Below, piece after piece: positions 12,001 through 40,800 of a DNA stretch of 64,000 nucleotides. The position numbers and the translations under genes were made by a program. The stretch is from positions 1,086,809 through 1,150,808 of the forward strand of contig OZ199838.1 in NCBI GenBank assembly GCA_964304625.1. Direction: 5' to 3'. The notes below the pieces were generated by a model, which saw only the letters and a list, made by a program, of their open reading frames with translations, made no database searches and was not told the origin of the DNA. This stretch comes from Kudoa neothunni (taxonomy: Eukaryota; Animalia; Cnidaria). Each line of letters starts with the position of its first letter. The stretch's first letter is position 1.

Positions 12001-12572
12001 CCTTACTTCGGACTGCGTTATTGACTATTTTTATACTTCTAAGTGAATGATCGATTTTCATTAATAGTTTTATCTATTAAAATACAAACTTACAGCTATA
12101 TTTAAAGAAAATTTCTCCGCGGCACATGCGTACTACTGCAAATTGACACACACGGGCAGACATAAGAACTTTGTTATGTATAGAAGATAAAAAATTGCCC
12201 TCGTTATTAAAACTCAAAGAAATCATTTTCTCTATCGCGCGAGAAATTTGATAAACTCCTCGCTTAAATATTTAACATTTTGTTATTTAAATCAAATATT
12301 TCATCCAACAAATGTTATTAAGGCGTATAATAAATATAAAAGTTAATGCGTGCACAATAAGGCGGGTTATCACTGGTTATTGGAAACTTAATGAAGATTT
12401 CACGTGTGCCGACTGTGTTGTATTGGGGATTTTGCACCAAAATTAGGTGTTACCATAATTAGCTGAATACTTCCACTCGGTATTATTTTATTATGAACAT
12501 TCGTGAAAGAATCGGCGAAAAAAACGATGCGCAGAAGGGTTTTTTTAGGTGCCACATCCTACCCTATTACCC
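9091..12572 (-). mobile_element. Merlin (IS1595/ISXO2-like) element with ~270-bp TIRs and a decayed transposase
   Basis: 9091-9365 (GGGCAATAGGGTAGGACATGGCACC...) is the reverse complement of 12302-12572. Minus-strand remnants near 9990-10230 read VSPRSRTFF...IYKIIYYWS and GGRGYVVEIYETLLRGKRKNNR, matching the transposase at 31.3-32.0 kb. No TSD was recognised. Confidence 0.85.
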
Positions 12573-14283: not shown

Positions 14284-14285
14284 TA

Positions 14286-16112: not shown

Positions 16113-16143
<31 letters not shown>

Positions 16144-16260
16144 TCTTCTAATTATTCGTTATTAAAAATTAAATTTATAGTTACATCTAAGTGATTTAAA
16201 CGTCTAAATATGAATTATTGTTGGAACCAAAATGGTGCCGAGTTCAATTGAGAAACCCTA
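14286..16260 (+). mobile_element. Full-length but inactivated Tc1/IS630-like (DD34E) transposon
   Basis: About 55-bp TIRs (TAGGGCTTCTCAATTGAACTCGGCACCATTTTGGTTCCAACA... and its reverse complement at 16205-16260) with a TA duplication on both sides (14284-85, 16261-62). Confidence 0.93.
14850..15876 (+). pseudogene. DD34E transposase with several in-frame stops in the HTH half
   Basis: Catalytic motifs VFLDEVGF, FVMDNARIHH and YLPPYGPFLNPIENVFS, with 34 residues between the second D and the E. In-frame stops lie near 14869, 14986, 15133 and 15223. Confidence 0.9.
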
Positions 16261-17166
16261 TAATTTCTAGTTCAATAAGCATATCTGAATCTTAATTCTT
16301 AAAAACTGACTAGCGCGCGCTGTTTGCATTTTGGTCATGAAATATTGTAATTAAAAATATTCATTTTATTAAATAGAGAGTTATTCAAATATGTATCATT
16401 AAGTAATTTAATTTAGCTAACGATATTTTATTCAACAATCATACGGAATTGGTAAACGAGTTAAGATCGCATTTAATTTTTCGAATTTTTTGTAACAGTT
16501 AATAAATAAAAATTTTGAAATAAATTAATCAGTATCCTTATTAGAATGAAAATACTTCTTTAATATGTAAAAGAAAATTAGGAAAATTTAATTGAGTTAA
16601 AATTCATTTCTCCTAATTATATTACAACAACTATTCCATGCATACCAAATTCTATCTATGATATTTATTGGCTACATGAATTTCAAATATCCAATTAGAT
16701 GGTATATTTGTTTAATTCATAATAGTTTATATATAAGAATCCCAAAAAATTTAACAACCAAATGAATTATTATACAACATATGTTTTAATTTTGAGAAAG
16801 ATTTATTTAATAATTTCTTAATGAAATAATTATCGTATTAACCATCTTTTGTTTAGCTATATTTTAATTAATTCATCCCATTAATAGTCCAATTATAATG
16901 AGTTTTTTATGTCTAATTTTATTAAATTTTGTCATTGTATTTTTTTGTCATAGATGATAAAAAGATACGTGATTGTATATTTCCATATAAAATAGTAATA
17001 ATATTTGCAAAAACCAGAAGTTTTCGATTTATATTTGGCCATTTATAATTGCTTGTTTCTTGCGAATTTTAATCCCATTCATACCATTCATTACAGTCAA
17101 ATTGAAATATTCAGTCTGATAAATGCAACGATAATTTTTCGTATGAACATTATACATATGATAAGA

Positions 17167-20091
17167 ATGAAGTTATTGGTACATTTATTTGAAATATGCT
17201 TGATTTTTTCCTGTAATTAACAATTAAATTCTTTTTATTAATAAAATATAGCTAAATTTGTTTCACTTGATGCGGAGACAGGTGGAGTACAAACTCCGGC
17301 TGTACCGCAAGCTCCAGTTCTAGCACAAGTTCCTACTAAGGCACTCAATTACTCTATCGTAAAAGATAACAGTGGTGGAAGAGAAGTACAATTAAAATTA
17401 ACTGGTAGTGATTTCGCTGGATCCAAAAAATGTTATATCAAGAAATCTGCTGAAAACCTTGGAAGTTATACAGACATAGATACTTGTCTTCAAGGCAATG
17501 ATCAATGTGGAAATAATAATTGTTGTAGAACATGTACGGGAAATGGAAATAAATTTACCTTCGATAAATTTTCACCAAGAACTAAGTATGTAGTTGTATT
17601 TGCTGGGGATAATGCTTCAGCTCCTGTCTCGAAAACTAATGATGGGGCAGTTTTTGGACTTGAAATAGGTAAATTAATGATATATTCTTTTTTTTAAACT
17701 TGATATTAGCACTATTGATTAATCCAAAAGTTACAATAACTGTTACAGAGGATAAGAAACTTAAATTGAGCACATCTACATGTGAACCGGTTGAATGCCC
17801 CATATATTATAAAGATGTGAAATATGTAGGAGGAACTGCAGGGGATACCTGTATTGCTGCAAAAAATAGTGAAGATGAAGTCGAATTTGATTTGATGATA
17901 CCTCATTATGAAATGAGGTGTAAGGATTATCCAAGTTTTTTTTATAAATTGCAAAACGCTTATACATTGATGAGTATGGATGTTTATAAACCACAATATT
18001 ATGTCAAATATAATGATGCTAGTAAAAATAAATATTTGTTAAAGTTTACAAACAAATTTCCATTCGAAATATGCCGATTCAGCATTAAAGATAAAGATAC
18101 TCAAATTATTGCTGGTAAGAGCGATGAATATACTTCCAATTGTGGCGGAACAAATAAAGATTGTTACGCTCCTTGTAATGACGTCGAACTAAAGTTTACT
18201 GCTTCAAAAACCGTAGTTGATGTATTGATCCAATCCAGACATTTTCCTTTAAATAAATATAACAATAAGTATTATGGATACGAACAGAAAAAGTTTGGTA
18301 ATTTGAGTACTTATGAATTCAACTAATTCCGTTTAGTTGTAACTGAACCTTCCCCTCCTGGGAATGATTTATTATCAGATATCAAAAATAATGGTGTCAC
18401 TCTGAATGTTCCTCTATTTAACCATCAGTAAACCCTAAATTTTCAACGTGTACAGTGAAATATTATCCGGCAGACAAACCACCACCAAGTGACGGAGCAG
18501 GAACTAAGTGTGGAAATTCTGATACCGACTGTTAAAACTGACTGTCTGGCTACTTTAAAAATAACCGAACTTTTGAGTGGTAAACCATATATACTTACAA
18601 TTGCAGCTGCTACAACACATGACGTGCCAGAAAACTTTAAAGAGCATATATTCTTTCGAACAGGTAAGAGATATAAAGAATAAATAGATTTTATTGATAA
18701 TTATATAGAAAAAGGAGAATCAAATACATTTCCTACAGTAACCCCAACGATGGGAGAGAGAACTGCTTCGATCAAGGCCTTAGATGGACAAGAAACTTTA
18801 TCAAGTTCTGACATTACATGTTCTTATTATGTTAGTCCCAGAGGAAAGGATGTGTACGTCTGTGCAATGTGCGTCGATAGTTATCCATGTCGAGGTTATT
18901 GCAGAGAGACTCAAACAATTGTTGGATTTAAAATCAGGAACAGAATATGATCTTAAAGTTGTTGCTCACAAAGAATATGGCACCAAAATACATCAGATCA
19001 CAACAGGTATAAAATTAGCTACAAAAATAAATAATGAATTTTTAGTGAAATCAAGACTCACACTTGAGAAACAATTTGTTGATAAAGGTTTCAAAATAAT
19101 AGGCACATTATCTACTCCGGATGATACAGCTGAGTGTCATTACAATGTGGAAAATTAAAAATGGAGACAAATATAAATTGGTTTATCAATGCCCAAGAGC
19201 ACCCATTTCTACAGAACCAGCTAAAAAATCCTCCAGTAAATCGAAATACGATAAAATCACTGTAGCTAGATCGTCTGCTGATCTATCTACCTCGACAACA
19301 AAAAAAACTATTTCACCATCATTAGCTACATGCACCGAGATTGCTTTGTGCTCCGAAAATATTATTCACGAATAATTATGATCGATTAAAAAAATATCGT
19401 GTAGTGGTAACATCAGTTAATGGAAAAGTACAAACAAATATTGTAATTCCTGAAAGTAGAATATTTTTTAATTTGATAATTTTATTATGAAAATAAATAA
19501 TGTAAATGATTAAAATTAGATCCACTACCAACAAACCAGGATATAAACAAACAAATTATAGTAAGTATTAAGCGCGATGGAAACAAATTGAAGATCACAA
19601 CAGTACTACCACAGGAAGTATCTGAAAGCACTTGTGGTTGGGAATTAAGAGATTCAACTAAACCTGATAAAGTTTTAATTAAATCATGCAATGGGGAAAA
19701 CGATGGAGGTTGTGAAAGTTTTCCAAAATGTAACGAATTTGAAATCACTGATGTTGAAGACACAAACGATTATCATCTGACGGTTTACGTAAATAATGAC
19801 AAATCAATCAAAGGAAATAGTGAAATTAAGCAAGGTAAATGTGAGTCGTTCTTTCGATTAATAATTTTATTTTAGGAGAAACGTTTGATACAATGAAATC
19901 AACGTAATTTGACATGTATATATAATTAATTAATTTATAATTATATTATAGGTCCAAAAATACCATGTAAAAATATATATTGTTGTTATATATTAAAATA
20001 ATTATTATATAGAATAATTGTAGTTGCAGCGGTTGTAGGTGTAATTGTCCTTACAGCAATTATCTTCGTTATTATAAAGAAGAAGAATTAA
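17167..20091 (+). pseudogene. Cys-rich FN3-like membrane protein paralogue 2 (four single-base frameshifts; pseudogene or assembly error)
   Basis: Same 10-exon layout: signal MKLLVHLFEICLIFS, TM IIIVVAAVVGVIVLTAIIFVII, KKKN-stop. Relative to copies 3/4 it has -1 at ~18422, +T at 18927-29, +A at 19151-54 and +A at 19356-59. Confidence 0.75.
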
Positions 20092-20842
20092 CCAACTAAT
20101 ATTTAATTATTTAGTATTTATTCAGAAAACTTTATATTCGAATATTTGAACTTGTTTTCTTATTTTTTTTTATGATTATTCTTAAAATAATAAAATTTGA
20201 TACTTATAATGGGTTACTGATAGTATGCAATTAGATTTGACCGCTATATTCATTATTAATACAGATATTTAAGTTTAAAATATTTTTATCATAATAATAA
20301 TAATGAATAATTTTCTTAATTTTTTTTGGTTTAATCTAGTGAATTATTTATACATTAGGTCATCTAGCCCACAAATTATTGGTTTTTTTTCAGATTAACT
20401 ATGTCGATTTAATTTTGGTGGTGACTATTTTACAATTGCTAAATTATTCCATCGTGGAACTTGGAATTTAACCAGAATTAACATTTCTTAAGCAAAAGGG
20501 TAGAGTTTTTTAAAATTTTATGACTATTGTTTTTCACATATTTTTAGATAAATGCATTAGATTTATACTTGTAGTAATGTGAAGATAGTCTAGTTCTGAT
20601 CTGAACTTGAATACAATCATTAGAAATCGCAATGACTCAACCAATAATAGTTTATTTTCATTTTAATGTATAAACATATCAAAGTAATAATCAGAAAATC
20701 CGGCAGTTACTATAAATTATAGACTACGTTAAAATTATTTAATTTTTTATAAATATATACTTTCATAAAAAAAGATGAATTATTTTTATCACAAAGTAAA
20801 TAATATAATGAAATGTAAATAAAAAAAAATTTGCATGTTTAT

Positions 20843-21253
20843 TTTTACGAGTGCCTCAAAATTTACTATACACTTTATGCTTTTTGGGGTCTATTTGACC
20901 CCACGTTTTTATTGAACGCCGGTATTAAGAAATTAATTGTGAGGGAAACGTTTTACAATGTTTTATTAATAAGGAATTAGATTTTTATTTATTAAAACAA
21001 CATTAGATTCAAAAAGTCATTAAAATCGTTGAATTTTACGTTTATTTTAACGCTGAAGCTCCTTGGTAATCATCGTTATAAATCGGAAACGTGATATTCG
21101 TTATATTTTTTCAATATTTTATCGATAATTTTTTTATATATTTTTGAAAAATAATTCTTTTATTTTTTTCATAATTCAAGCTAAAAAAAATTTGAGGTCC
21201 ATTCGACACCAAAAGAAGGAATGTGTAAAGTCGATTTTCAGGCGCTCGTAGGG
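20843..21253. mobile_element. piggyBac-like MITE
   Basis: The right end reads ...GGCGCTCGTAGGG|TTAA. The left end TACGAGTGCCTCAAAATT...TTTTGGGGTCTATTTGACCCCA is a decayed reverse complement of it over about 60 bp. Confidence 0.6.
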
Positions 21254-22157
21254 TTAAATACAAATACAAATTAGCAATACATTATTTAAGAAATAATCAT
21301 CTCTTGATTTTTAGAGGTGCATAATTTTTAGTTTAGAAAATTTCGAATGCAATTTTTTTGTTTAAAGGTACGGTCTTATGAGTTTGTAGGAGTATTCTAA
21401 GAATTCTACAGAAAAAAAATTCTCGTGCTTTGAGTAAAATAAAAAATATTTCTTTTGGAGTATGGCGAATAACCCAACCCCGAAAGGAAAGATTAATCGT
21501 ACATTTATATGAACGTACTATGTAAATTGTAACAATTAACAGCCAAGAAATCTTAGTAGATCATATATTCGCATATCATACTTTGGTATTTTAGTAGATA
21601 AAAAACGACGTAAACTTACATCTTAGAACGAAAATCTAGTTAAAAAATGCTTTAAACATATATTGCTTCTATAATAGACCTATCTTTAATTACAATGAAA
21701 TCGTAATTTTTATTTGTGACGATTACTCAACTATAAAGTTAATTTTACTTGAAAAATTCTCAACATATATTTTTTTACGAGTTAATAAATGTATTTAATT
21801 GAGGAGATAACTAAATAAAATAAAGTAAAAATTCGAATGTTTGAATTTTGGAATAAATTTTATCATAAATATTTTGCATCAAGAAAAAATTACTTAATAA
21901 ATTTATTGGAAAATGCTATTGTTAAATTTAAAAATCTTTGTTCTGATTGTAAATAGAATAAATCAGAAAGTTCTGTTTTTGAAATACGAAGTCAAAAGAT
22001 TGGACCTTTACACCTTTATTACTAACCGATACAAATAAAAAAATCGAAGAACGATTATTGAATAAGAATAATTTTTAAATCACGGAAAATTATAAATTAT
22101 TTTGAAGTATTTCTCAACAATATGAGTACTTCATGTGCATCAGAATGTGATCGACTT

Positions 22158-22360
22158 AAGATTTATTTCCAATATACTAGTTAATTCTTATTGCTCTAAA
22201 ATTTAGTAAGTCTCAGGTATTTTTTGTGATAAAAACAAAAATGACAAAATTTCGAAGAAGAAGAAGAAGAAGAAGTGTGTTAACAGGACGAATTGTGCGG
22301 AACAACTTGATTTCCGATTGCATACCTGAACTCCGTACACAGATACTGCAGTTTAAGCGG
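22158..22360 (+). repeat. Partial copy (right half) of the MITE at 28281-28686
   Basis: AAGATTTATTTCCA... and TTAACAGGACGAATTGTGCGGAACAAC...TTTCCGATTG align with 28497-28640. Confidence 0.55.
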
Positions 22361-23011
22361 AAAAAGATGTTTAAAAGTTTGTGATTATCGAAAAAGTTTA
22401 CGAGATAATATCTTCTCTACATTCTCATAATTTTGTTGATACCCCATGTTAGAAAATATATAAAAAATATGTTGCGAGCTAAATGACTAATTGGAAAATT
22501 CAAAAAGTGTGAATGATGAATCTCTGATTTAATATTTAAAAAATAAATCTAAGATATTATGAAAAATTATAATTTCGAAAATTTAATAATATTAATAAGA
22601 CTTTCATTTCATACCATCTGTCCTAGAATTATTAGAAAACATATAATCCAGATAAATCATAATATTGAATTAAACGTGTAAAACTATAATTAATTTCTTA
22701 GTTGGACGATACATATATTTTTAATGTGGGAAAACCACCTTTACAATAATTACAGTAATAGATAAAAATAAAAATCTTCTAATTTTATGTAAGGACCAAA
22801 AAATTGTTCTTTTCACATTTAATGAGAAATAAAGAGAGGGATTACTTATTATTTCCTGGATTAACAGATATTTGAAATTTTAAAAGATTAAAATACATTT
22901 TTTTGTTATTCGCGACCAACGAATTTTAAATCAAAATGCATTTAATGTTATAGGATTTATTCAACGTGGGCACAAAAGTTTTAGAATTCTACTGAAATAC
23001 AAGGTTCATAG

Positions 23012-23577
23012 CAGGGGTCGGCAAACTACGGCCGTCGGGCCTAATCCGGTCCTCCAGTTATTTCTTTACCAACCAGCCATACATTGACTAGCATAAAATT
23101 TTTTCTTTAGCGTCTAAAATACGTAAATAATTTTAAGGTTTTTATCTAGATCGTTTTCTACATGTTAAAATGTTGTCGATATAAATATTTCAGCCAAATA
23201 ACATTCATTTTCATTAAGTCAGAAAACTGGAAAAATATAAATATCAAAATAACGTTAAAATAGTTTTTTGGAAAATATAAAATATTTTTAAATATACATA
23301 TAGATACATCTGATAATACTTGACATCAGAATAAATAGTGTTTCCACCAGTTATGTAAGAGTTGTTTACACCGGAAATGAAAATTATTAGCATATAATAA
23401 TTTTTATTCAACGTAATTTTTTAGTTAAAATGACTTATAATTTTTAATTTCTATGTTTATATTCAATATTTGAATTATAAATAATTTTAAATTTTTGTAA
23501 ATTAATTTTGATACGGCTTGCATTAAAGTTTGGGCATACTAGTTTGACCCGACACTCAAAAAGATTGCCGACCCCTG
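23012..23577. mobile_element. hAT (Charlie-like) MITE, 566 bp
   Basis: Perfect 13-bp TIRs CAGGGGTCGGCAA / TTGCCGACCCCTG. The 8-bp flanks GTTCATAG and GTTTAAAG match at 6/8 positions, consistent with a decayed TSD. Confidence 0.88.
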
Positions 23578-24850
23578 GTTTAAAGCCTAAAAACAGTGAG
23601 TTGCCTTATTCGATAATCAACGGCATATCAAACGTGAATATATTTTAAATTTAATATTATCTCTCTTTGGTGACTATTAGAATTAAACTAGGTTAATGGG
23701 CACAAACAAGTAATAAATTACTCGTAAATAGAATTAATATTATAATATTTCAATCATATAACATTTTCTCCTAACCTAAGTGTTATGTAGATTATTACAC
23801 TCTCAATTTCTATTTCGCACCTTTTTCCTAGTCTCAAAAGAGTGTATCAAGTGTTATTTAGTGTATTATGTTTCCATTGATAGAGTAAATATTCTAATGA
23901 TATATAAAGAAGAGAACTTTATTTAGTATTTATTCATCCGTGGATGAATTAATAATTAAAAATATTTACTTAACTAAATAAAGAATTATTTAAATATCTA
24001 TCAAGGAGTAAATTGGGTTTACTTTAGCTTACGAAACATAAATATTTTATAAAAGTTAATTTATTACTATTAGCTGATAGTAATTGTGATATTAGTTGAA
24101 ATAAGATAACAATATTTAATCAGCAATCATATAGAATTAGTAAACGAGTTAAGATCTCATTTGAATATTAGAATTTTTTGATAACCACTAATAAATAAAT
24201 GTTTAAAAATAAATTAATTAGTATCTTCATTAGAATAAAAATACTTCTTAAATAAGTTGAAGGAAAATTCATGGAATTTAACTAAATTTAAATTTATTTC
24301 ACCTTAATTTATTACAACAATTATTCTATGCATTCAAATGCTATCTATGATATTTATAGGTTGCATGAATTTCAAATATCTAATTAGATAGTAAATTTGT
24401 TTAATTCATAATAGTTTATACAGAAGAAATCCAGGAAATTTAACAACCAAATGAATTATTATACGACATATGTTTTTATTTTGAGAAAGATTTATGTAAT
24501 ATAACCCAAATGAAATAATAATCGCATTAACCATCTGTTGATTAGCTATATTTTAATTAATTTATTTTATTAATAACACAACTTTAAAGAGTTTTTGTCT
24601 AATTTTATTAAATTTTTTCATTGTACTTTTTTTCCATAGATGATAAAACGGTATGTAATTCTACATTTACAAATAAAATATTAACAATATTTTCAAAAAC
24701 AGAAGTTTTTTAATTATATTTAGTCATTTATAATTGTTTGTTTCTCGCGAATTTTAATCCCATTCAAACCATTCATTACAGTCAAATTGAAATATTCAGT
24801 CTGATAAATGCAACGATAATTTTCGTATGTACATTATACATATGATAAGA

Positions 24851-27777
24851 ATGAAGTTATTGGTACATTTATTTGAAATATGCTTGATTTTTTCCTGTAA
24901 TTAACAATTAAATTCTTTTTATTAATAAAATATAGCTAAATTCGTTTCACTTAATGGAGAGACTGTTAGGGTACAAACTCCGGCTGCACCACAAGTTCCA
25001 GTTCCAACAGAAGTTCCTACAATGGCACTCAGTTATTCTATCGTAAAAGATAACAGTGGTGGAAGAGAAGTACAATTAAAATTAACTGGTAGTGATTTTG
25101 GTGAATCCACAAAATGTTATATCAAGAAATCTGCTGAAAACCTTGGAAGTTATAGAGACATCGATACCTGTTCTCAACCTAATGAACAATGCGCAAATAA
25201 TAATTGTTGTAGAACATGTACGGGAAATGGCAATAAATTCACCTTCGATAAATTTTCACCAAGGACAAAATACGTAGTGGTATTTTCTGGAGACACTACT
25301 TCAACTCTTGTCTCGAAAACCAATGATGGAACAGTTTTTGGACTTGAATTACGTAACTAATGATACTTTAAGTTTGTTTAACTTGATATTAGCACTATTG
25401 GTTAATCCACAAGTTACAATAACTGTTACAGACGGTAAAAAACTCAAATTAAGCACTATCACATGTAAACAAGTTGCATGCCCCATATATTACAAAGATG
25501 TGAAATATGTAGAAGGAACTGCAGGGGATAGTTGTACTACTGCACATGCTAGTGATAATGAGGTGGAATTTGATTTGATGATCCCACATTATGAAATGAG
25601 GTGTAAGGATTATCCAAGTTTCTTTTATAAATTGCAAAACGCTTATACATTGATGAGTATGGATGTTTATAAACCACAATATTATGTCAAATATAATGAT
25701 GCTAGTAAAAATAAATATTTGTTAAAGTTTACAAACAAATTTCCATTCGAAATATGCCGATTCAGTATTAAAGATCACTCAACCACCGTCGATGCTACCA
25801 CGTCCAACGAATATACATCAAATTGTGGTGGAACAAATAAAATTTGTTACGCTCCTTGTAATGACGTCGAACTAGCTTTTACTGCTTCAAAAACCGTAGT
25901 CGATATATTGATCCAATCTAGACATTTTCCTTCAGAAAAACAAACCAATGTTTATCTCGGATACAAGCAGAAAAAGTTTGGTAATTTTAATATTTTTAAT
26001 CTTAAATAATCTCCCTTAGTTGTTATTGAACCCTCCGCTGCTGAGAGAGCATTATTCTCAAAAATCACAAAAAGTGGTGTCACATTGAATGTTCCACTAT
26101 TTAATCCATCAGAAGACCCTAAATTTTCAACTTGTACAGTGAAATATTACGCAGCAGATAAACCACCACCAAATGATGGAACGGCAGCTAATTGCGAAGA
26201 TCCTAGTGCCGTTTGTCAAAAGGACTGTCAGGCTGCTTTAACAATATCAGGACTTTTAAGTGGTAAACCATATACACTCACAATTACACCAGCGACTACA
26301 AATGGCATACCAACCGACTTTAAAGAGCATATATTCTTTCGAACTGGTAAGAGATATAAAGAATAAATAGATTTTATTGATAATTATATAGAAAAAGGAG
26401 AATCAAATACATTTCCTACAGTGACCCCAACGATGGGAGAGAGAACTGCTTCGATCAAGGCCATAGATGTAGATGAAGGCGGAGTTTTATCAAGTTCGGA
26501 CATTACATGTGCTTATTATGTTAGTCCCAGAGGAAAGGATGTGTACGTCTGTGCAATGTGCGTCGATAGCTATCCTTGTCGAGGTTATTGCAAAGAGACT
26601 CAAACAATTGTTGGATTAAAATCAGGAACAGAATATGATCTTAAAGTTGTTGCTCATAAAGAATATGGTACCAAAATACATCAGATCACAACAGGTATAA
26701 AATTAGCTACAAAAATAAATAATGAATTTTTAGTGAAATCAAGACTCACACTTGAGAAACAATTTGTTGAGAAAGGTTTCAAAATAATAGGAACATTATC
26801 TACTCCAGACGATACAGCTGAATGCCATTACAATGTGGAAATTAAAAATGGAGACAAATATAAATTGGTTTATCAATGCCCACGAGCACCCATTTCTACA
26901 GAACCAGCTAAAAAATCCTCCAGTAAATCGAAATACGATAAAATCACTGTAGCTAGATCGTCTGCTGATCTATCTACCTCGACAACAAAAAAAACTATTT
27001 CACCATCATTAGCTACATGCACCGAGATTGCTTTATGCTCCGAAATATTATTCACGAATAATTATGATCGATTAAAAAAATATCGTGTAGTGGTAACATC
27101 AGTTAATGGAAAAGTACAAACAAATATTGTAATTCCTGAAAGTAGAATATTTTTTAATTTGATAATTTTATTATGAAAATAAATAATGTAAATGATTAAA
27201 ATTAGATCCACTACCAACAAACCAGGATATAAACAAACAAATTATAGTAAGTATTAAGCGCGATGGAAACAAATTAAAGATCACAACAATACTACCAAAG
27301 GAAGTAGCTGAAAGCACTTGTGGTTGGGAATTAAGAGATTCAACTAAACCTGATAAAGTTTTAATTAAATCATGCAATGGGGAAAACGATGGAGGTTGTG
27401 AAAGTTTTCCAAAATGTAACGAATTTGAAATCACTGATGTTGAAGACACAAACGATTATCATCTGACGGTTTACGTAAATAATGACAAATCAATCAAAGG
27501 AAATAGTGAAATTAAGCAGGGTAAATGTGAGTCGTCTTTCGATTAATAATTTTATTTTAGGAGAAACGTTTGATACAATGAAATCAACGTAATTTGACAT
27601 GTATATATAATTAATTTATTTATAATTAAATTTTAGATCCAAAAACACCATGTAAAACTATATATTGTTGCTATATAATAAATTAATTAATAATATAGAA
27701 TAATAGTAGTAGCTGCAGTTGCAGGTGTAGTTGTCCTTGTAGCGGTTATATTCGTTGTCATAAAGAAGAAGAATTAG
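24851..27777 (+). CDS. Cys-rich FN3-like repeat type-I membrane protein, paralogue 3 (apparently intact)
   Basis: ATG at 24851 starts a signal peptide. GT-AG introns of mostly 39-42 nt fall at the same phase-1 positions as in copy 1. There is a 28-nt and a 15-nt (27637-27651) micro-exon, and a TM exon ending KKKN-TAG. Confidence 0.88.
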
Positions 27778-27973
27778 CCAACTAATATTTATTTTATCAT
27801 TTTTATTTATTATTTATTAACCTTTCTGTTTGATTATTCGAATTTTTCTTCGTCTTTTTTTATAATTATTCATAAAATAATAAAATTTGATAATTATAGT
27901 TGGTAACTAATAGATCGTACTTTAATTGAATTCGCGTGAGCACACAAACACAATTTAAATAATGGCGAATTAA

Positions 27974-29615
27974 TCTGTCTATATCTATATCTATCTTCGT
28001 TTTCTATCTATGTTTCTACTATATATATATATATATAAAGCTGAAGTGTCCGTGCGTGTGTCGGCAAGTAAGCATGCGAGTCAAAATTTTTTAAAAATTA
28101 TAATTTTTCAAAAAATCTTTAATTCGTTTTCACATTATCAAATGTTCCCAGAAGTGTTTAGAAAATGGTTATTTCGTCGATTCAAAGTTTGTTTATTGGA
28201 TTACTTGAGTTTAACAATAAGATTAACACCTGTTTATAACCTGTTGATGGTCGGTTGAAGTTTATTAAAATACACTTTAAGGCTAACTACAATAACTGTA
28301 TACGAATTTGGTGCGGCACCGACATGCAATCGGAACAAAGTCGTTTCCTACAATTTGTCCTACTAATTTATTTCTCATAAAAAATTTTCAATATTTCTTT
28401 ACATCATAAAAAATTTATAATTATAGAAAAATAACAATTTTTAAAGTATTTATCAACAGCATTAAGGTTTCACGTGAATCCGAATATGTTCCACGCAAGA
28501 TTTATTTCCAGTTTAGGAGATAATTCCTTTTGGTGTAAAATTTATTAAGTTATTCTTTTAATGATAAAAAAAAGAGAAAAATTTTCAAAAACGTAGTATA
28601 TTAACAGGATAAATTGTAGGAAACAACATTTCCGGTTGTTTATGAGATACCGCCCGAAATTGGCACACAAAATTGTAGCTTAGTCCAATTCTGTGTAAAA
28701 CCGCAGTAGAGACTTTATCGGTTGATATTTGCTAGATTAGTCTTAATTGGTCTTTTCCTAGACCACACGTCGATATTTTCTTACATTCAAGCTGAAATGA
28801 TCTAAACCTTTACGCTTTTTATACTTTAGTAAAAGTTAAATTTTTATCATAAAAACGTATCTGGCTATTTAAATGACATTTGAAATGAAAACGATTGATA
28901 TTTACTTCTCTTATTTTTCCTTTTTTATCCAATATTTATTAGAGTTTACTTTTCAGCATAACATCAGGGTCATATTCAAAATATGCCATAACAAAGTGCA
29001 TGAGATCACATGATGTTATATTTATATGATTAATATTATTCTTCTGTCTGGACGATAATTTGGTTTATTTTATCACGTATCTAGGAACTTAAAAAATACG
29101 TTTCATATAGCCATTAATGATTAATCATATTTTTCACTAGCCCATTCTTTTTTCTTATGTAAAAATAACGTGAACAAATTTAACGGGAGCATGTGATGAT
29201 TAATTAAATTAAATAATCTGATTATTCGATTTAGATATTCTGATTAAGCATTTAAATAATAAAAATACGTCGCATAAATACACCAATGTATTAACATCAT
29301 GAAACAGCATTTAATTTAAATTGTCGAAAAGAATTTTATGGAGACATCAGCTTCAGAATTCATAGTTAAACAAAACATTATGTTTTTACACGGGGACAAT
29401 CTAATTTTGTATTAATCTGATTTGTGCGCTATCAAAGTGACTGTATTAAATTTGATCCGTATTCAAGTTGTGATATTTTATTGATTAAAAAGAACCTTTC
29501 CTCTCTATGGTTTATTTCCTATATTTTTTAATAAATTGTTACAAATTACTACAAAAAATTTGTTACGTAAAAACATTGGGCAAGGAACCTGAGCGTGAGC
29601 CAAAGTTTGGGCTAG
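27974..29615 (+). mobile_element. Non-autonomous Helitron-like element, copy B
   Basis: Stuttered TCTAT/TCTACT(AT)nAAAGCTGAAG 5' end; homologous to 1575-1840; GC-richer subterminus then CTAG|T at 29612-29616. Confidence 0.6.
28281..28686. mobile_element. MITE with ~110-bp imperfect TIRs nested in Helitron copy B
   Basis: GGCTAACTACAAT...GTTTCCTACAATTTGTCCT at the left end is the reverse complement of AGGATAAATTGTAGGAAAC...ATTGTAGCTTAGTCC at the right end. Confidence 0.65.
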
Positions 29616-31199
29616 TTGAATATATGTCTAAAGTTAATTAATTTTAAATAATCTTGGCTAAAACTAGCTAACAAAAGTTTAATCAAAGATCAAACATAAT
29701 TAATATATGGGTTTAGGTCACATTTAATTTTTCTGGATTATTTAATAGCTACTAATAAATATTTTTAACTTAACACATTATTTTCTTTGTTTGAATAAGA
29801 ATGTTTCTTTAACTTTTAAATGAAACTCCGAAGAACCTAGTTAAATAATCATTCATTATTCTAAATAAATTAATGTATATTTTTTATGCATAAAAATCTA
29901 TATGGGAGAAACAAAAGTTCTAAAAATGAAAAATTATACAATGTACGCTTTAATTTCTAGAAGAGTTAATTTAACAAAACATCAATGAAACAATATAGTA
30001 TTGACCTTATTTGTCTATGGTTTAATTCTTTCAGTCTATGAATAATTCGATTTTAGAATCTGTGTATGGCTAATACAATTTAATATTTTAACCTTCTAAA
30101 GACCAAAAAACACAGTAATGGGGGAGTGTACAGCTCCCATTTTTCACCTCTTTGCGCATATCCGACAATCCCAGTTTTAATTTAAATCAATTATTCACTA
30201 TTTAAACTTTTGACCGAACAGCAATTAACCCCATAATTCACTTCTAAGAATTTTGCTAACATTCATTTTCGGATTAAATCGGCACACGTGTGAGTGAATT
30301 CGCAAGGTAGTTTTGTTCTGTTTTCCATATGAATTTACCTTATTAGCGATGAATAAGCATTGTTTAACGTTGCTTTAAATTTAATATGAATGGTTGCAAC
30401 GTCGTGGAAACTAATAATAACTGTTTATAATTGCACGAAATAATTAATGTTTATTAATTTCGTTTGCTACAGCTCTCTAACTTTCTGCTTTTGTATAATC
30501 ATTTTTCATAAATTTTTTTAGTTTATATATTATTTTTAATATTCTATACCTGCAAGACAGCGAAAGAAGACACAATTTGAAATAAGAACACAGGATTAAC
30601 AAATATATTACATGCATTATTATTTTTCTTTCAAAAACATATTAACTAAGAATTAATTCACATAAACTTTTAATATTGAATATGAAAACCGTAAATTTGC
30701 AGTTTTATACGGGGTTTAAAATTTTTTATAAAGTCGTTATGAATTTATAAATTGATTCCATAGGAACTCTCTGTAAGCTTTTATTCGATGGTATTTTTTA
30801 CCAAGATATTTTTTGTAAATAAGTCATATATGGTAGAAAAAGCATGTTTTTATTTTTATCATTTTAATTCTATCGACAAATTAAGTTTTGTGATTTCATT
30901 TATAGTTTTCAGTTTTCTACATTAAAAATATTACTTAAGATAATTTAAAGTTTGTATTTCAGGTATTATAACATTCTTATGAGATTAAAAAGTTAATATT
31001 ACGATAATCGATGATTCCGTTTAAAAATAATTCAAGAATATAAAGGATAATACAAAACTCTTAATTTAAATATTATAGTTATTTTCAATTTAGCAGTGCG
31101 CATAGAATAAAAACATAAATTTAAAGAACCAAAAAATGGAATTATTATTCAATTAATTCTAAGAGATAGGGTAGAGTGTGTTTATTGAATTTAAATAAA

Positions 31200-32298
31200 A
31201 TTGAAAAATTCCCATTTATTGCTGAACTTCGATCGCATCCATTCTTCGTGAAGATATGAATTAAGGTACGCTATGGGGACACCACTCATCCGTCGTAATA
31301 ATTTGGTCATAAAATGGTATCACACAACTTCCACTGTATTTGTGTGGTGACTTTCTATTGTGACGAATACCTTGGAATAGTTACCACTTATGTGGGTAAA
31401 TCCATACATTCCAATGGTTGGATATGCTTTCCATTCTTCAGTAAAGATTGTGGAACCAGACTCAACTTCTTGACGTCTTAATGGTATCAATGTACTTGCA
31501 TCCCTTCTTTGAGCAATAAAATATCTAGACTCTAATAGACTTCTTTTGCCTTCACAATCGACGGAGTATTCGCATATTCCCGCCACCCAAGGCCCTTCGA
31601 TACGAATACCATAACGCTCAACAGTGTAGGAATTTTCCCTCCTTTCAGTTAAGTCATTCTTCGATTCAGATGGATTATAGGTTTCAATAGGGGCGTTTCT
31701 CCACCAATCATATGCCAAATATCGTCCACGATTATTTTTTCGCTTTCCTTTTAGGAGACATTCATCAGTTTCGACAACTTTTTTAGGGCCACCAAATTTT
31801 GAACGCAAATAAAACGATTCAGTTGAAATTATCCAAAATTTGGAAAGCCAATATGTAACCGTTTTTCCAGATAATTGCGCCAAACTAACTGTTTTGCATC
31901 GCTGTTCTTCGAAACTCCATAAATATACAATCTCAAATATTTCCTGAATTGTTAAATTTGAACAATTATTGCCAAGTACGTTAGTTATTGAAAAGAACGT
32001 TGATGTCTGAGGAGAACAATTAGTTTTGTAGTTTCTATCGTAGAAAATAAAATATGTTTTACTAACAACATTACTTGGAACATATATATGAAAATTTTTC
32101 AGCTAAGTTATTTTTTCATTCATGCAAAGCATTATTATTTAATTTTCTTTTAATAACTTTCAGTTTAAAATTATGTCTTCCACAATTTCTGCACCTTGTA
32201 GAAATTCGGATAAGGTTTTTGTCAATTTACAAATTTGTTAGTTTCTCGTTTCTGAGTAAAAAGCTGTAAAATTGGTGTTGGCTACAGATTAACACCAT
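31200..32298 (-). pseudogene. Merlin/ISXO2 (DDE_Tnp_IS1595-like) transposase, disrupted
   Basis: Motifs GGPKKVVETDECLLKGKRKNNRGR, WVAGICE, RRDASTLIPL, GSTIFTEEWKAY and HTNTVE, plus downstream YLNSYLHEEWMR and upstream RCRNCG. Stops and frameshifts are present. Confidence 0.88.
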
Positions 32299-32341
32299 AA
32301 GGTAAATTCAGTAAATGTCTTGTTAATTAAAATGAAAACTA

Positions 32342-34225
32342 CAGTCGAATCTGGATATTGCGTAATTTATTTCCATCCTCAAAAAATTACGCAATATCCA
32401 GAAATTACTCAATATAGGTATTGGCGCAAGCGCATTGTGTAAGAACAAAAATTTATTTTGGTTTAAAATAACTAGTAATTTCAGTCTGTTTATGCTTTTT
32501 TTGGATTATTTCAGGTATGAAATTCATAACTGGATGCGTTGAAAATAATGCTTTTGGGTTTTCTTGCATAAAAGCTTTTCTGATTAAATTGATCGCTTTT
32601 TTAAGTTCCGAAGTTGACACAAGCGTTTCATCTTTTACAAAATCCGGATTGACATTCTCTTAAAATTTATCAGTTTCGTGCGTTTCAGGTAAATCTATCT
32701 TTTTCTCCTCTTCAATGTTGTTGATTTCGTCAAATTTTTTATCTAAAAAATAAGGTTGATGTACAATGTAAAAGTGTGAAAAAATTTTCACCATCTAATA
32801 ATTTTTAATTCAGGGTTATAAAGGATGGAATTACAATGCTCAAAAAGTCTAGATTTTCTGAAACAATTTTGAATAGTAATCGAAGATACGTTTTCCCATG
32901 TCTACTTCAAAGTTTTTATACAGTCCAAAACGGTATACTTAATTAAATTTGAACTGTTGTCTTCAGATAATTGATAGGTTGTCAAAATTTTACAATACTG
33001 GCATTTTAAACCGCGTATGACACCAAGGTCCATTGGTTGTAGTACACTTGTGGTGTTTTTAGGTAAAAATACTAGTTTAACATTTTCAAAGTGATGGAGG
33101 TTTTGTGGATGCACAGGGCACTGATCCAATAATATTAGAACTTTCCTTTTTCTTCTCGTATTTTTTATCATAGGATTTAAGGATATCGTAAAAAATTTCA
33201 GAAGACATCCAAACATTTTTTATGCATAATTTTTCAAAGGAAATGACTCTGATTTATTAAAACACCTGGGTTTTTGATACTTCCCTATTACAATATGTGG
33301 GAATTTTTTCCCTGTTAAAGACGCAGACACAAGAACAGTAACCTTTTTCTTGGATTGTTTCATTCCTTTTACGTCGGATTCGTCATTTAGAGTATACGTG
33401 TGTAAGAGTAACTGTTCATAAAAACGAGGCGTTTCATCCATGTTTATTATGTAGCATTTTTTGTATCCTAGTGAAATTCCTGGAAATTTAACCAAAAAAT
33501 CCAGTACAGTTTGATTATTCACACTGCTGGCTTCACCATGCAATTTTTATAATGAATACAGTATCTATTTTTAAATCCCACGAACCAACCATTACTACCG
33601 GAAAATTCATCAGGCCCTATAGATTTAGCGATACTTTTGGCCTTTTCAACAATTAAGTATGCAGGGACAATCTTCTTCTGATTTCGTATTTTAGTGATCC
33701 ACGTATAGAGTAAATTGTCCAACTCCTTGTATTTGCCTTCTTTCATTCTTTTTCTTGAAGTTGAAACAGTAGAATTAACAATATAATTTTGATCAGCTAT
33801 AATCCTATCATGTGTAAAGTGCCCTGCAAATATACTTTAATGGGGTTAGATAATTTTATATTACTAGATAGCGTGAAATGTTTAACAGTCATTGCTTTTG
33901 CTCCTTTAAGAGATTTAATTGAATTATAGTATTCGATAATTTCAATTTTTTCAGCCACCATTCGCTGGTTCCTTGTCATTTTTGTTTCGCAGAATTCGAA
34001 AAGAAGATTAAGGGGGATTAAACTAAACAAAATGGTAAGCAGTAGAGATATTTTAGTTTTAGCTCAAAATCTTAAATTTTTACATCGTTAATAACAACTT
34101 TTTATCTTAGCTTGCTTTGTTAACATCTATTTAAATACTATATACGCAATGTTTAATTAAAAGATCTAAAATATACGTTATATTTCAATAAACTTGTGAA
34201 ATTACGCAATATCCAGGTTCAACTG
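32342..34225 (-). mobile_element. pogo/Tigger element (DD31D) with a frameshifted transposase
   Basis: TIRs CAGTCGAATCTGGATATTGCGTAATTT and AAATTACGCAATATCCAGGTTCAACTG, with TA on the left and CA on the right. ORF pieces 33797-34030, 33519-33746 (CENP-B HTH, FSGSNGWF), 33220-33543 (HGEA, NMDET) and 32902-33216 (LLDQCPVH, FLPKNTTSVLQPMDLG). Confidence 0.93.
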
Positions 34226-34967
34226 CATTCTGAAAATGTAAGAATTTGTTATTAATGTTTGGATACGAATAAAGAATACATTAATTATTAGGAGTTCATA
34301 AAATAAATTATAAATATACTAGAATTAATTTTAGGTAAAAACCAAAACTTAAGCGAGATATCTTTTCAAAGTTTCTTCTTAGTGAGCTTCAAAAAAATTG
34401 ACGGAATCAAAGTGATGCAGTTAAAGCGAAAATGTTTTCCATTATAATCGACAGAAAGATTAACACTTTATTGAAATAATGTCGATAAAAACACATTATA
34501 AATTTAAAACGACGCAAAACCATGCTTAATCATGTCTAATAAGTTAAATTCATATTGAAAATAGAACAAAACTACCTTGCGAATTCACACGCACATGTAC
34601 CGATTGAAGCCGAACGTAAATTTTAGCAAAATTCTTAAAAGTGAATAATGGGGTTAATTGTTGTTCCACAAAAAGTATAAAAAATGAATAATTGATTTAA
34701 AATAAAATCCGGATTGTCGGATATGTGAAAAGGGGTGAAAAATGGGAGCTGCACACTCCCCATTACTGATTATATAAAGGTAAGTAATTCTATATTTTCA
34801 AACAAATTATCTAAAATTATTTTTAAAAACAGAACGGCGATTTTTTCTCATTCGATTACAATTTTTTGGCGAATTTTGATCCTATTCTAACTATCCATTA
34901 ATCTCATATTGAAATAGTCCAATAAATGCAACGAGAATTATCGTATAAAAAATATATACAGGGTTAA

Positions 34968-37867
34968 ATGAAATTATTAGCATACTTTTTTGGAATATGT
35001 TTAGTTATTTCATGTAAATTAACAATTATGTTGTATTTTCTAATAAAATATAGCTAAATCCGTGTCATTAACTGTGGGGAATGATCAGGTTCCAGCTGCG
35101 GCTCCAGCGGAAGCTCCTACAAAGACACTCAGCTATAAAATTCTAAAAGAAGATACTGGAACAACGGTTCAGTTAAAACTGACTGGTAGTGATTTTGATG
35201 GATCCAAAAAATGTTATATCAAGAAGTCTGCTGAAAACCTTGGAAGTTATGCAGACATAGATACTTGTTCTAGAACTGGCAATGAATGCGACAGTAGTAA
35301 ATGTTGTATAACATGTAATGAAGGGGGAAATAAATTGGCATTCGATAAATTTTCACCAAGAACAAAGTATGTAGTTGTATTTGATGGGGATAGTGCGTCA
35401 ACTCTCGTCTCGAAAACTAATGATGGAACAGTTTTTGGGCTTGAATTGGGTAAGCTAATGATATTTTTTTGTTTTATTAACTTGATATTAGCATTACTGG
35501 TCAATCCAAAAGTTACAATAACTGTTACAACTGAAAAGAAACTTAAATTAAGCACTATTACATGCAAACCAGTTACATGCCCTATATATTTCAAAAATGT
35601 ATTATACGCAACCGGAAATGCAGGGGGTAGCTGTATTGCTGCACATGCTGATAATAATGAAGTGGAATTCGATTTGATGATACCTCATTATGAAATGAGA
35701 TGTGAAGGATATCCAAGTTTTTATTATAAATTGCAAAACGTATATACTTTGATGAGTATGGATGTTTATAAACCACAATATTATGTCAAATATAATGATG
35801 CTAGTAAAAGTAAATATTTGATAAAGTTCACCAACAAATTTCCCTTCGAAATATGTCGATTCAGCATTAAAGATAAAGATACTCAAATTATTGCAGGTAA
35901 GAGCGATGAATATACTTCCAATTGTGGTGGAACAAATAAAGATTGTTACGCTCCTTGTAATGACGTCGAACTAGCTTTTACTGCTTCAAAAACCGTAGTT
36001 GATGTATTGATCCAATCCAGACATTTTCCTTTAAATAAATATAACAATAAGTATTATGGATACGAACAGAAAAAGTTTGGTAATTTTAATATTTTTAATC
36101 TTAAATAATCTCCCTTAGTTGTTATTGAACCCTCCGCTGCTGAGAGTGCATTATTCTCAAACATCAAAAATAATGGTGTCACTTTGAATGTTCTTCTACT
36201 TAATCCATCCGACGGCCCCAAATTTTCAACTTGTACAGTGAAATATTATGAAGCAGATAAACCACCAAAAGAAGGAACACAGGCTAAATGTGGAAGTTCG
36301 CCCACCAACTGTCCTACTGACTGCAACGCTGCTAAAGCAATAACTGAACTTTCAAGTGGTAAACCATATATACTCACAATTACACCAGCAACATCGAGTG
36401 GCCTTCCAACCGACTTTAAAGAGCATATATTCTTTCGAACTGGTAAGAGATATAAAGAATAAATAGATTTTATCTAAAGTTATATAGAAAAAAATGACAC
36501 AAAGACATTTCCAGAAGTAACACCAACGTTAGGTGAGAGAACTGCTTCAATTAAGGCTATAGATGAAGGCGGAGTTTTATCAAATGAGGACATTACATGT
36601 GCTTATTATGTTAGTCCCAGAGGAAAGGATGTGTACGTCTGTGCAATGTGCGTCGATAGCTATCCTTGTCGAGGTTATTGCAAAGAGACTCAAACAATTG
36701 TTGGATTAAAATCAGGAACAGAATATGATCTTAAAGTTGTTGCTCATAAAGAATATGGTACCAAAATACATCAGATCACAACAGGTATAAAATTAGCTAC
36801 AAAAATAAATAATGAATTTTTAGTGAAATCAAGACTCACACTTGAGAAACAATTTGTTGAGAAAGGTTTCAAAATAATAGGAACATTATCTACTCCAGAC
36901 GATACAGCTGAATGCCATTACAATGTGGAAATTAAAAATGGAGACAAATATAAATTGGTTTATCAATGCCCACGAGCACCCATTTCTACAGAACCAGCTA
37001 AAAAATCCGCAAGTAAGTCGAAATATGATAAAATCACTGTAGCTAGATCGTCTGCTGATCTATCTACCTCGACAACAAAAAAAACTATTTCACTATCATT
37101 AGCTACATGCACCGAGATTCCTTTATGCTCCGAAATATTATTCACGAATAATTATGATCGATTAAAAAAATATCGTGTAGTGGTAACATCAGTTAATGGA
37201 AAAGTACAAACAAATATTGTAATTCCTGAAAGTATAATTTTTTTTAACTTGATAATTTTATTATGAAAATAAATAATGTAAATGATTAAAATTAGATCCA
37301 CTACCAACAAACCAGGATATAAACAAACAAATTATAGTGAGTATTAAGCGTGATGGAAACAAATTGAAGATCACAACAGTACTACCACAGGAAGTAGCTG
37401 AAAGCACTTGTGGTTGGGAATTAAGAGATTCAACTAAACCTGATAAAGTTTTAATTAAATCATGCAATGGGGAAAACGATGGAGGTTGTGAAAGTTTTCC
37501 AAAATGTAACGAATTTGAAATCACTGATGTTGAAGACACAAACGATTATCATCTGACGGTTTACGTAAATAATGACAAATCAATCAAAGGAAATAGTGAA
37601 ATTAAGCAAGGTAAATGTGAGTCGTCTTTCGATTAATAATTTTATTTTAGGAGAAACGTTTGATACAATGAAATCAACGTAATTTGACATGTATATATAA
37701 TTAATTAATTTATAATTATATTATAGGTCCAAAAACACCATGTAAAACTATATATTGTTGCTATATAATAAATTAATTAATAATATAGAATAATCGTAGT
37801 AGCTGCAGTTGCAGGTGTAGTTGTCCTTGTAGCGGTTATATTCGTTGTCATAAAGAAGAAGAATTAG
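34968..37867 (+). CDS. Cys-rich FN3-like repeat type-I membrane protein, paralogue 4 (apparently intact)
   Basis: ATG at 34968 (MKLLAYFFGICLVIS), first intron 35014-35053, the same exon layout and micro-exons as the other copies, and a TM exon ending KKKN-TAG. Confidence 0.88.
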
Positions 37868-40800
37868 CCAACTAATATTTATTTTATCATTTTTATTTAT
37901 TATTTATTAACCTTTCTGTTTGATTATTCAAATTTTTCTTCGTCTTTTTTTATAATTATTCATAAAATAATAAAATTTGTTGGTTTGAGTTGGTAACTGA
38001 TAGCATACAATTTCATTAATACGCAGTATTCATAGATAATATTGGATGCGATGTTTTAGGGTATTTTCGTAACAATTACGTTTTAAATATTTTCTCCAAT
38101 TTTTTGGTTTAAACGAGTGAATTATTTGTGTAGTACCTCATGTGCCTAACTAAAAATAGACTTTTTCAGTTGATTCATGTGGATTTAATTCTTGTTTGAT
38201 TGAAATGATGGTACAATTTAATGTTTTGTGTTTGAATCATGAAGATAAGTAAAAAATAATGTAATATTATGTCAGGTTGTATAAAAATATCCAAAAATTA
38301 TCGTTATAAACGTTTTGGAATTTACTCTATCCAAATTGACTAAAAAGCTTCAAAAATAATTAGGTTATTGATCAATTTCGCACAAAACCAGTAAAACACC
38401 GTGAAACTAAATATATTATTACTTGATTAGGCCTTATATTCCATTCAAGCAGAAAATGTAGACAAGGCTGAGTTGATAAAATAATTATAAAGAACGAGTT
38501 AGTTACTGCAGTAATAGCTTAATTGTACCCCAGAATTATCCCCCTGTCGCAAAATGAATAAGATACCGAATGCATGTTTTCACTCATAGTATGTTGATGT
38601 TAGTACAAATATAACTAATAAATGCTTCACCTATCTTACAGAGTTCTTTTACGTTAATTTTAATATTATACGTATAATTGGGATGAGAATGTCAAATTTG
38701 ATCCGAAATGGTCTAAAAAATTCATTAAAGGAAACAAAAATTCAGGAAGCTGAGCAAGATGCAGTGTGAGCTTTACTAGACAAGAATAAACCTGATCCTA
38801 CGATAAATGATCAATATGCATTTAGAATATTTAAATCGAGTCAGGTGTATAAAAATCACTTGTGAATTCGTCTATGGCAGTAGAATGATGTTTAAAATAT
38901 TAAAAAACATCAACTTTGTGAAATTATATATATTAATAAACTAAATTATATTACAATATAATGTTGTGTCAATCGCAGAGTGATATAATAAATACATTTT
39001 TTTAAAAATATTAAAGTTCAAAATATGATTATTTTAACAATGTTTAGAGAAAAAACGGAAGAATTAATTTTTTTTCAATTCTTGGAACTAAACATTCACA
39101 TCATTTGAATTTAGTGAAAGGTGGTATAATTTTATATCAATGATTATTATTTAAACTAAAATTAATAATTATATTTTAATGCGATTATCTATGATATCTA
39201 CTTTACCTTATTTGAACTTAATAAATAGTCTCAAAATACACGTAGATTATAAAAATACAAATATTAATTGGTGCGAAGGGCAGTTTATTGCGCATTATCG
39301 GTTACTCATTGTACTCTTATTGTTTTTAGTGATGTTTAAAATAAAAAGTTCAATCGGATATTTCCCAACTATATGTCTAAATCATTACTCATTATTAAGC
39401 CTCTTAAATAACTATATATCACTCACGATATTTACTATTTGATGATTTGTATGGTAATAGAAGTAATCAATAAGTGCTAAAGTTTTAATAAAATATGTTT
39501 ATTAAATTAAACCAAATATTTATGTGAGTTGAAATTAAAGCGTTATACGGATAATAACGTAAGTTACGTTCAAAAAATTATTGTTTACAAAAAAATATCA
39601 TTGATAATCTCTCAATATTTCATTAACGATACTAAAACTTTTTTTACGCCATCATAAATAAAATTTTGTTCGAAAATAATCATTTATAATAATCAAAGTT
39701 TAATTTGGATTCTTTATAACTATCGGTCTATCACGAATACTTTAGAATAGTAAAAATTTGTCACACGAAATTAAATGAAATTTTATTCGCCTCAAACAAT
39801 CTTTTGACATAAAAACGTTTTCAACTTTATATGTAGTGACAGATATCGTTTCCCTCTCACTTCAAATTATATTAAATCATATATAATATTAATTACTTGA
39901 TTATAATTATAGCTTATAATTTAAGAGATTATTAATAATTTATTGAAGTATACAAAATTATATATTTATTGCCAACCTTTGATATATTATCTTTGGGGCA
40001 TGTCTAATAAATAATTTAAAAATATGTCAACAAATTAGATTAATAAAGCGATTTTTGTTAAATCGCTAAGGGTATTTAAAAAAATGTATTCTTTACAAAC
40101 AACATTTTAAAACTTCAAAAATTAATAATTTATACGGTGGTATTATTAATTATAAAAGTCCTAACGTATCATTTTGTAAATAAAAAATTTGACTAACTAA
40201 GAATTTATAACATGGAATGTAATTTTTAAATTATAATTTGGACCATTATTTAGTAAAACACTATTTAATTTCTTCGATCTTATTTTTCTGGTGTTGTCAA
40301 CTTATTAAGTTAAATCACAGTATATAATATTTTCTATCGATAAATATCTACTTTTTATTAACACTATTACTTAATAAATTAATTAATACTGAAGAAATTA
40401 TAACCCTACGATTATATAAAGAAATTCTTCATATTAGTTAAATGATAATATTTAAAACAATTTTCAATCTTTATTGACTTTATAATTCTCGGAATTCGAA
40501 ATAATAATAAAAACAGATTATTTCAGATAAATTTTTAACGAAAAAATGGAAGCAATTACAAGTAATAATAAAATGTAATTAATTAATTAATTAATTAATA
40601 TCTATAGTTTGTAATTTTCGGAGTTTATTATGTCCGGCGAACGCCGTGATCTTATACTCTGTGAGAAAAGGTTCTAACCTCAAAAAAATAAGAACAAATT
40701 GTGACAATTTTAATTATCGCTTCGCTCTGAACAACATATAAATGCAAATAATGCTAGAATACACTTAAAACGTGGTCATTAGAATAGGTGTACATAATAA

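Follow-up and report, generated by a model that had tools for sequence, protein, structure and literature searches.

How have three neighboring genes come to resemble one another piecewise, with one pair of copies all but identical in one stretch and a different pair in the next? The question is raised by a 64,000-nucleotide window (C1:1,086,809-1,150,808) of the 40.26-Mb, four-contig genome of Kudoa neothunni, in which four paralogs of an FN3-like membrane-protein family all lie on the + strand. Copies 2 (17167-20091), 3 (24851-27777), and 4 (34968-37867) are mutually 85-89% identical over 3.3-3.8 kb and share a layout of 10 exons and 9 GT-AG introns of 39-64 nt, with phase-1 introns flanking the large exons. 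Copies 3 and 4 are intact, and their products (841 and 831 residues, respectively) are predicted type I membrane proteins with, in order, a signal peptide, a cysteine-containing ectodomain, a part encoded by two micro-exons, a transmembrane (TM) helix, and a 4-residue tail; a signal peptide, FN3-like modules, a TM helix, and a 4-residue tail are found in copy 2 as well. A first-pass annotation of the window had proposed that the nearest relative of copies 2-4 switches repeatedly along the gene, through segmental gene conversion or unequal crossover that shuffles variant cassettes. As described here, copies 2-4 are genuine patchworks, very probably formed by recent non-allelic gene conversion, mostly between tandem neighbors and occasionally across chromosomes.

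The blocks named in the first-pass annotation were each checked in a three-way alignment of copies 2-4, and all of them are present in the sequence. At the 517 informative sites, 333 adjacent pairs carry the same label, compared with 183.7 ± 10.5 upon permutation (maximum 229 in 20,000 permutations), and the clustering into blocks stays significant when the sites are thinned to 20-nt spacing, which rules out chance clustering and multi-nucleotide mutation. The signal persists at silent sites alone (n = 233; 150 adjacent same-label pairs against 84.5 ± 7.1 expected) and, together with introns that are identical over their whole length, this rules out convergent selection. The identical introns themselves change partners: introns 1 and 4 are shared by copies 2 and 3, introns 3 and 8 by copies 3 and 4, and intron 7 by copies 2 and 4. 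Private mutation in one copy misread as sharing is ruled out by shared-derived sites, polarized with five outside paralogs, which are clustered on their own (n = 101; 72 like neighbors against 36.7 ± 4.5). In a GENECONV-type test of eight genes, with Bonferroni correction over 28 pairs, eight identical tracts of ~110-420 bp are significant among copies 2-4, and all three pairings are represented (in copy 2 coordinates, 17147-17258 and 19349-19589 for copies 2 and 3; 18195-18304, 19349-19458, and 19622-19960 for copies 2 and 4; and 18809-19231, 19613-19832, and 20020-20199 for copies 3 and 4). In the main blocks, segment trees mutually reject one another's groupings by the approximately unbiased (AU) test (p = 0.001-0.04). 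Rather than one topology holding over all windows, the partner changes seven times or more within 3 kb.

Read from 5′ to 3′ along the + strand, the patchwork begins with tract 17147-17258 (copy 3, 24831-24942), which comprises the 5′ flank, exon 1, and intron 1 and is identical in copies 2 and 3, with 28 differences to copy 4, in line with what had been claimed for the promoter and exon 1. Copies 2 and 4 are then partners in the DKDT..YEQ block (18083-18304; copy 4, 35865-36086), a tract that holds two variable loops of exon 3 and 110 bp of complete identity; it has 5 differences between copies 2 and 4, as opposed to 47 and 44 against copy 3, and the alternative groupings are rejected (AU p ~0.001). 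Intron 3, placed exactly by the first-pass annotation, has 0 differences between copies 3 and 4 and 13 against copy 2, and the identical tract that covers it (25988-26047 in copy 3; 36087-36146 in copy 4) has 0 versus 20 differences. With the end of intron 4 and the start of exon 5, including EKGESNTFP, the partners are again copies 2 and 3 (18664-18779; copy 3, 26347-26462; 1 difference, compared with 20-21 against copy 4). An identical tract of ~420 bp in copies 3 and 4 (26499-26918 and 36589-37008, respectively; 423 bp at 18809-19231 in copy 2 coordinates) comes in addition to the blocks named previously and is followed by a tract of copies 2 and 3 at 19349-19589 (copy 3, 27036-27275). The micro-exon region (19622-19960; copy 4, 37398-37735) groups copies 2 and 4, with 1 versus 5-6 differences; here, the claim made for KITTVLPQEV and the micro-exon acceptor holds in direction, on ~8 sites, with the AU test rejecting a grouping of copies 2 and 3 (p = 0.005) and not one of copies 3 and 4 (p = 0.08), and this is the least supported of the claimed blocks. 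Finally, the last intron, the TM exon, and the 3′ untranslated region (3′ UTR) group copies 3 and 4 (27646-27889 and 37736-37979, respectively), with 2 differences over 19961-20199 in copy 2 coordinates and 51-52 against copy 2. Given a background synonymous divergence (dS) of 0.20-0.25 between copies 2-4, tracts that span 100-420 bp yet differ at 0-2 sites can only have arisen recently.

Gene conversion is favored as the process behind this pattern because the tracts start and stop within the gene and because one tract, also additional to those claimed before, links two chromosomes. In this case, a 125-bp stretch of copy 2 (19056-19180, + strand) is shared with L006, a paralog at G000:C3, 4.89 Mb, that is 80% identical overall; 30 consecutive polymorphic columns agree, against a null maximum of 22. 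The agreement, which includes derived states, is complete bar a one-base assembly indel and one other difference, at 7 positions within it copy 2 departs from copies 3 and 4, and the tract is bounded on both sides. Because L006 has letters of the copy 2-4 type only inside this tract, the transfer probably went from a copy-2-like gene to L006. A bounded tract between chromosomes is expected from conversion and not from tandem unequal crossover. Repeated unequal crossing-over in the tandem array, in which gain and loss of copies would generate chimeric genes with no non-reciprocal transfer required, is unlikely: the copies are indeed tandem and co-oriented, ~750 bp of upstream flank is common to copies 2 and 3, and the end blocks (copies 2 and 3 at the 5′ end, copies 3 and 4 at the 3′ end) resemble single crossovers, but the many partner switches within 3 kb, internal tracts as short as 60-120 bp, downstream flanks that are unrelated shortly past the 3′ UTR, and the L006 tract on another chromosome all speak against it. 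The tracts would then stem from conversion rather than from double crossover. Under gene conversion, stretches of 60-420 bp among three young paralogs would have been overwritten repeatedly in the course of ordinary homologous repair, in exchange mainly with tandem neighbors and sometimes between chromosomes; the main outcome would be a homogenized conserved membrane-proximal half, with an occasional tract bringing variable loops into a new background.

The GENECONV-type test also finds tracts of the same kind among paralogs L004-L008. These nearest outside paralogs (L004-L008 and L014 are located at G000:C3 4.89-4.93 Mb and C1 1.345 Mb) are mutual mosaics as well, in the pairs L005/L008, L004/L006, L004/L008, and L006/L008; exon 2 of L005 is longer by 174-195 nt, and exon 6 of L008 is shorter by 66 nt, in frame. 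A loop of copy 3 (25766-25820) is closer to L004 and L006 than to the neighbor copies (segment bootstrap 91) and may have come from the C3 cluster at an earlier time.

What do the tracts do to the proteins? Of the mechanism first proposed, segmental exchange stands, with conversion favored; the comparison with loci for antigenic variation or allorecognition, in which variant cassettes are shuffled, is not supported. Purifying selection is seen in every region: by counting methods, the ratio of nonsynonymous to synonymous divergence (dN/dS) is 0.19-0.52 by exon across eight paralogs (i.e., below 1 in every exon; the exon 5 figure includes 13 codons of the 39-nt intron 19007-19045 counted as coding) and 0.38-0.40 between copies 2-4, and no 15-codon window has a proportion of nonsynonymous differences (pN) clearly above that of synonymous ones (pS). 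Exons 2 and 4 and the loops of exon 3 are more variable, with silent divergence that is equal or higher. Because most of the long tracts lie in introns and in the conserved membrane-proximal 3′ half, their main effect is homogenization. The exception is tract 18083-18304, by which copies 2 and 4 were given the same two variable loops, and a diversifying effect, if of some extent only, is real in this case. At the breakpoints, there is no fixed or repeated motif and there are no boundary repeats, which rules out fixed cassette borders. The family does not have the look of a silent, pseudogene-type archive, since exon 5 is open in most of its members; donors that are silent though intact, as in ves1, are possible. 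Nor is there a clear donor/recipient polarity, given that copies 3 and 4 are intact and that all three copies share and differ in turn. The 4-residue tail contains no tyrosine and no immunoreceptor tyrosine-based activation or inhibition motif (ITAM/ITIM). Since dN/dS is low, most tracts fall in the conserved 3′ half, and neither cassette borders nor a silent archive were found, antigenic variation and allorecognition are not supported.

That the family forms a variant surface coat of Kudoa, in which conversion among hundreds of intact paralogs makes new loop combinations at a rate that lets them segregate in the course of a single infection, is quite unlikely. An antigenic-variation locus of the Babesia ves1 or mosaic variant surface glycoprotein (VSG) type, where, under immune selection, an expressed copy receives segments from other family members by conversion, is very unlikely in view of the purifying selection, the location of most tracts, and the lack of boundary repeats and of polarity, although the family is large and spread over all three chromosomes, the product, in a parasite of fish, is predicted to lie at the surface, two variable loops are exchanged by one tract, and tract sizes overlap the ~110-bp mean of ves1 conversion (PMC7485966). 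The gene was found in no RNA run. In addition, the assembly and a read-derived contig disagree in one patch, described below, a difference that a second allele of a diploid explains.

The assembly was compared with reads by matching four runs of one sample, in the form of Logan contigs, to copy 2, a check that covers the copy 2 junctions. As assembled, the copy 2 exons contain five 1-nt indels (18421, ~18532, 18927, 19151, and 19356). A 413-nt read-derived contig corresponds to 18280-18692 with no substitution and without the indels at 18421 and 18532, and all or most of the contig depth lacks the extra bases at 18927, 19151, 19356, and 19849, in places where the contigs may derive from copies 3 or 4. 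Since the read-derived contigs lack the indels, copy 2 is probably intact and its frameshifts are probably consensus errors of the assembly; a role for copy 2 as a pseudogene donor is ruled out on the same evidence. Over 17135-20383, at least 12 small indels are not in the read-derived contigs, which suggests a poorly covered assembly stretch, and similar frame breaks in L006, L007, L010, and L013 may be errors too. Copy-2-specific substitutions appear in read-derived contigs at 18280-18692 and 20004-20400, the TM exon and 3′ UTR belonging to copy 2 are continuous in them with its downstream flank, and the junction from the 2+3 to the 2+4 block (18074/18083) is crossed by a read-derived contig, with the diagnostic sites inside one 31-mer. 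An assembly artefact, with paralog or haplotype reads mixed at low coverage, is extremely unlikely as the source of the patchwork, for while the ~7x coverage, the indel errors in copy 2, and 3′ halves that are 97-100% identical would favor one, the copy-2-specific blocks recur in read-derived contigs with 0-1 substitutions, the junction is found within that single 31-mer, the tracts have few differences of their own (1-5), the pattern repeats in other clusters (L004-L008), and HiFi reads are several times longer than a 3-kb gene.

The patch mentioned above (17848-17903, + strand), where a read-derived contig has copy-3/4-like letters in a copy-2 background, is a candidate for a second allele. 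One run matches 17517-17912 exactly and another has 11 other letters over the same span; the eight listed variant letters (17854-17882) are copy 3 states, and seven of the eight are copy 4 states as well. Because the region has no 30-nt identical stretch between copies 2 and 3, and because its left flank is unique among the loci, the variant did not arise as a graph chimera between genes in the assembly. The simplest reading of this variant, which is not in the assembly, is a second allele of the diploid that differs by a patch; it is possible that it represents an unassembled paralog.

It should be noted that several points weigh against recent conversion as the origin of these patchworks. 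The data come from a single low-coverage assembly (~7x HiFi, diploid, purged; PMC12239612), the runs are probably from the assembly's own sample and hence not independent, phase is lost in Logan contigs wherever 30 nt or more are identical, and the read check was made on copy 2 alone. The borders of the segments in the AU test were picked after seeing the data. For tandem tracts, moreover, conversion and repeated unequal crossover are not distinguishable, and one assembly cannot show both products of an event.

How large is the family? A profile search with exon 5 matched the best 150 of 324 candidates, on all three chromosomes and mostly without stops, and the family comprises at least ~145 loci in this genome; 8 of 13 full gene models have an open frame, one of them with a non-canonical donor. 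With exon 3, the profile search found 16 proteins at 26-54% identity. Five of these relatives were traced (L031-L035), to AT-rich contigs (17-35% GC) in four other public samples, and hence the family is not confined to the Kudoa genome; the family member in L035 has genes for SNF5/INI1 and ribosomal protein S14 next to it, an arrangement like that of compact eukaryote genomes. No description of the family was found in the literature on Kudoa with FN3 or gene conversion. The genome paper makes no mention of fibronectin domains or gene families; it reports a 40.2-Mb assembly from infected tuna with three chromosomes and a mitochondrial contig at ~7x HiFi, ~30% GC, (TAAACC)n at one chromosome end, and 5,316 annotated proteins in this gene-poor myxozoan (PMC12239612). 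In our hands, the TAAACC repeat is found in a single place, at ~12.04 Mb on C2.

Homology searches were made exon by exon, and the joined gene models were used for frame and codon counts only. Exon 4 is predicted to have an FN3-type beta-sandwich fold: its model (predicted local distance difference test [pLDDT] score 81) has FN3 domains as its best structural matches, which are the top rows in both VIA-align and Foldseek, with a moderate Z of 8.4 and a root-mean-square deviation of 2.5-2.9 over 82-84 residues. The exon 3 model contains two beta-sandwiches at low confidence (pLDDT 63), and exon 5 has weak fn3 and titin matches. There would be one or two FN3-like modules per phase-1 exon, ~7 in all. 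In spite of the likeness to the FN3 domain (PF00041) in exons 4 and 5, the family scores 16-24 bits, below the Pfam cut-off of 25, and differs in having extra conserved cysteines and 8-21% identity. Pfam gave no useful match for exons 2-3 and none to an immunoglobulin (Ig) domain, and a word-indexed homology search with the open reading frame (ORF) of exons 2-3 gave no result, subject to query length limits. The proteins would lie at the surface, where they may act in adhesion or host contact.

Copy 1 (3842-6831, + strand, ends set by eye) is a distant paralog (24-47% amino acid identity per matched exon) that lies outside the exchange; it matches copies 2-4 exactly over no more than 14 nt, which rules it out as an exchange partner. 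The exons of copy 4 are at 34968-35013, 35054-35449, 35492-36079, 36119-36442, 36488-36784, 36824-37231, 37296-37610, 37651-37678, 37727-37741, and 37789-37867. The ninth intron of the gene models, which is absent from the first-pass annotation, is the 39-nt intron 19007-19045; it can be read through in frame in copies 2-4 and has stops in other paralogs. Together with intron 2 of copy 4 (35450-35491) and introns within the long ORF of copy 1 (4403-5692), it is a multiple of three without stops, so that retention would preserve the frame. Upstream of copy 4, 271-bp inverted repeats (85%) at 30113-34768 surround a piece of an ISXO2/Merlin-like transposase and a broken Tc5/pogo-like transposase; this element ends 200 bp upstream of the copy 4 start, at the point where homology to copies 2 and 3 breaks off. 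Two further elements with terminal inverted repeats separate copy 1 from copy 2, at 9091-12572 (276 bp, 90%) and 14284-16262 (64 bp, 94%), the latter enclosing a DDE_3 transposase ORF at 15226-15876. The window further holds a NOP2/NSUN-type RNA methyltransferase gene split by introns (PF01189; 1-1372) and, on the + strand at 44750-57400, one or more long multi-exon genes, including a 760-residue ORF (50215-52497), with no Pfam match in the pieces tested.

Gene conversion between paralogs is a well-known, textbook process. What is new is a very large FN3-like membrane-protein family in a gene-poor myxozoan, with distant relatives in AT-rich samples, together with the interchromosomal tract, the read evidence for the copy 2 frameshifts as errors, and a candidate segregating patch. 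Because conversion between loci is recent, single-copy markers or antigens will not follow loci reliably, and because consensus errors can create frameshifts in the assembly, the number of pseudogenes in the family is likely overestimated. Should the proteins cover the parasite's surface, they would be obvious candidates for mediating contact with the host and evasion of its immune system in fish muscle; were the variant-coat reading true, this animal parasite, a cnidarian, would vary its antigens by gene conversion.

Among known systems, ves1 of Babesia bovis is likewise a large surface-protein family with mosaic genes built from ~100-bp tracts, and in it one transcribed locus receives tracts from silent paralogs during infection (PMC7485966). 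In contrast, selection is purifying here, and the likeness concerns the DNA pattern only. Hydractinia Alr proteins, too, are cnidarian single-pass membrane proteins with an exon-per-domain organization, an FN3-like fold, and clustered paralogs; they have 1-3 N-terminal Ig domains of the V-set/I-set types and then one FN3-like segment, are encoded in a single complex, and often carry ITAM/ITIM in their tails (PMC9546547), whereas the family described here has ~7 FN3-like modules, is spread over three chromosomes, and ends in its 4-residue tail. Three Alr tails are under 14 residues (PMC9546547), so a short tail alone is not decisive; the family is not classed with Alr. Allele-specific homophilic binding and extreme allelic polymorphism are further features of Alr proteins. 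Closest in kind is concerted evolution in tandem multigene families, where short identical tracts, including introns, likewise switch partners, are commonest between close neighbors, and homogenize conserved parts; by this comparison, novelty lies in the family and the lineage alone.

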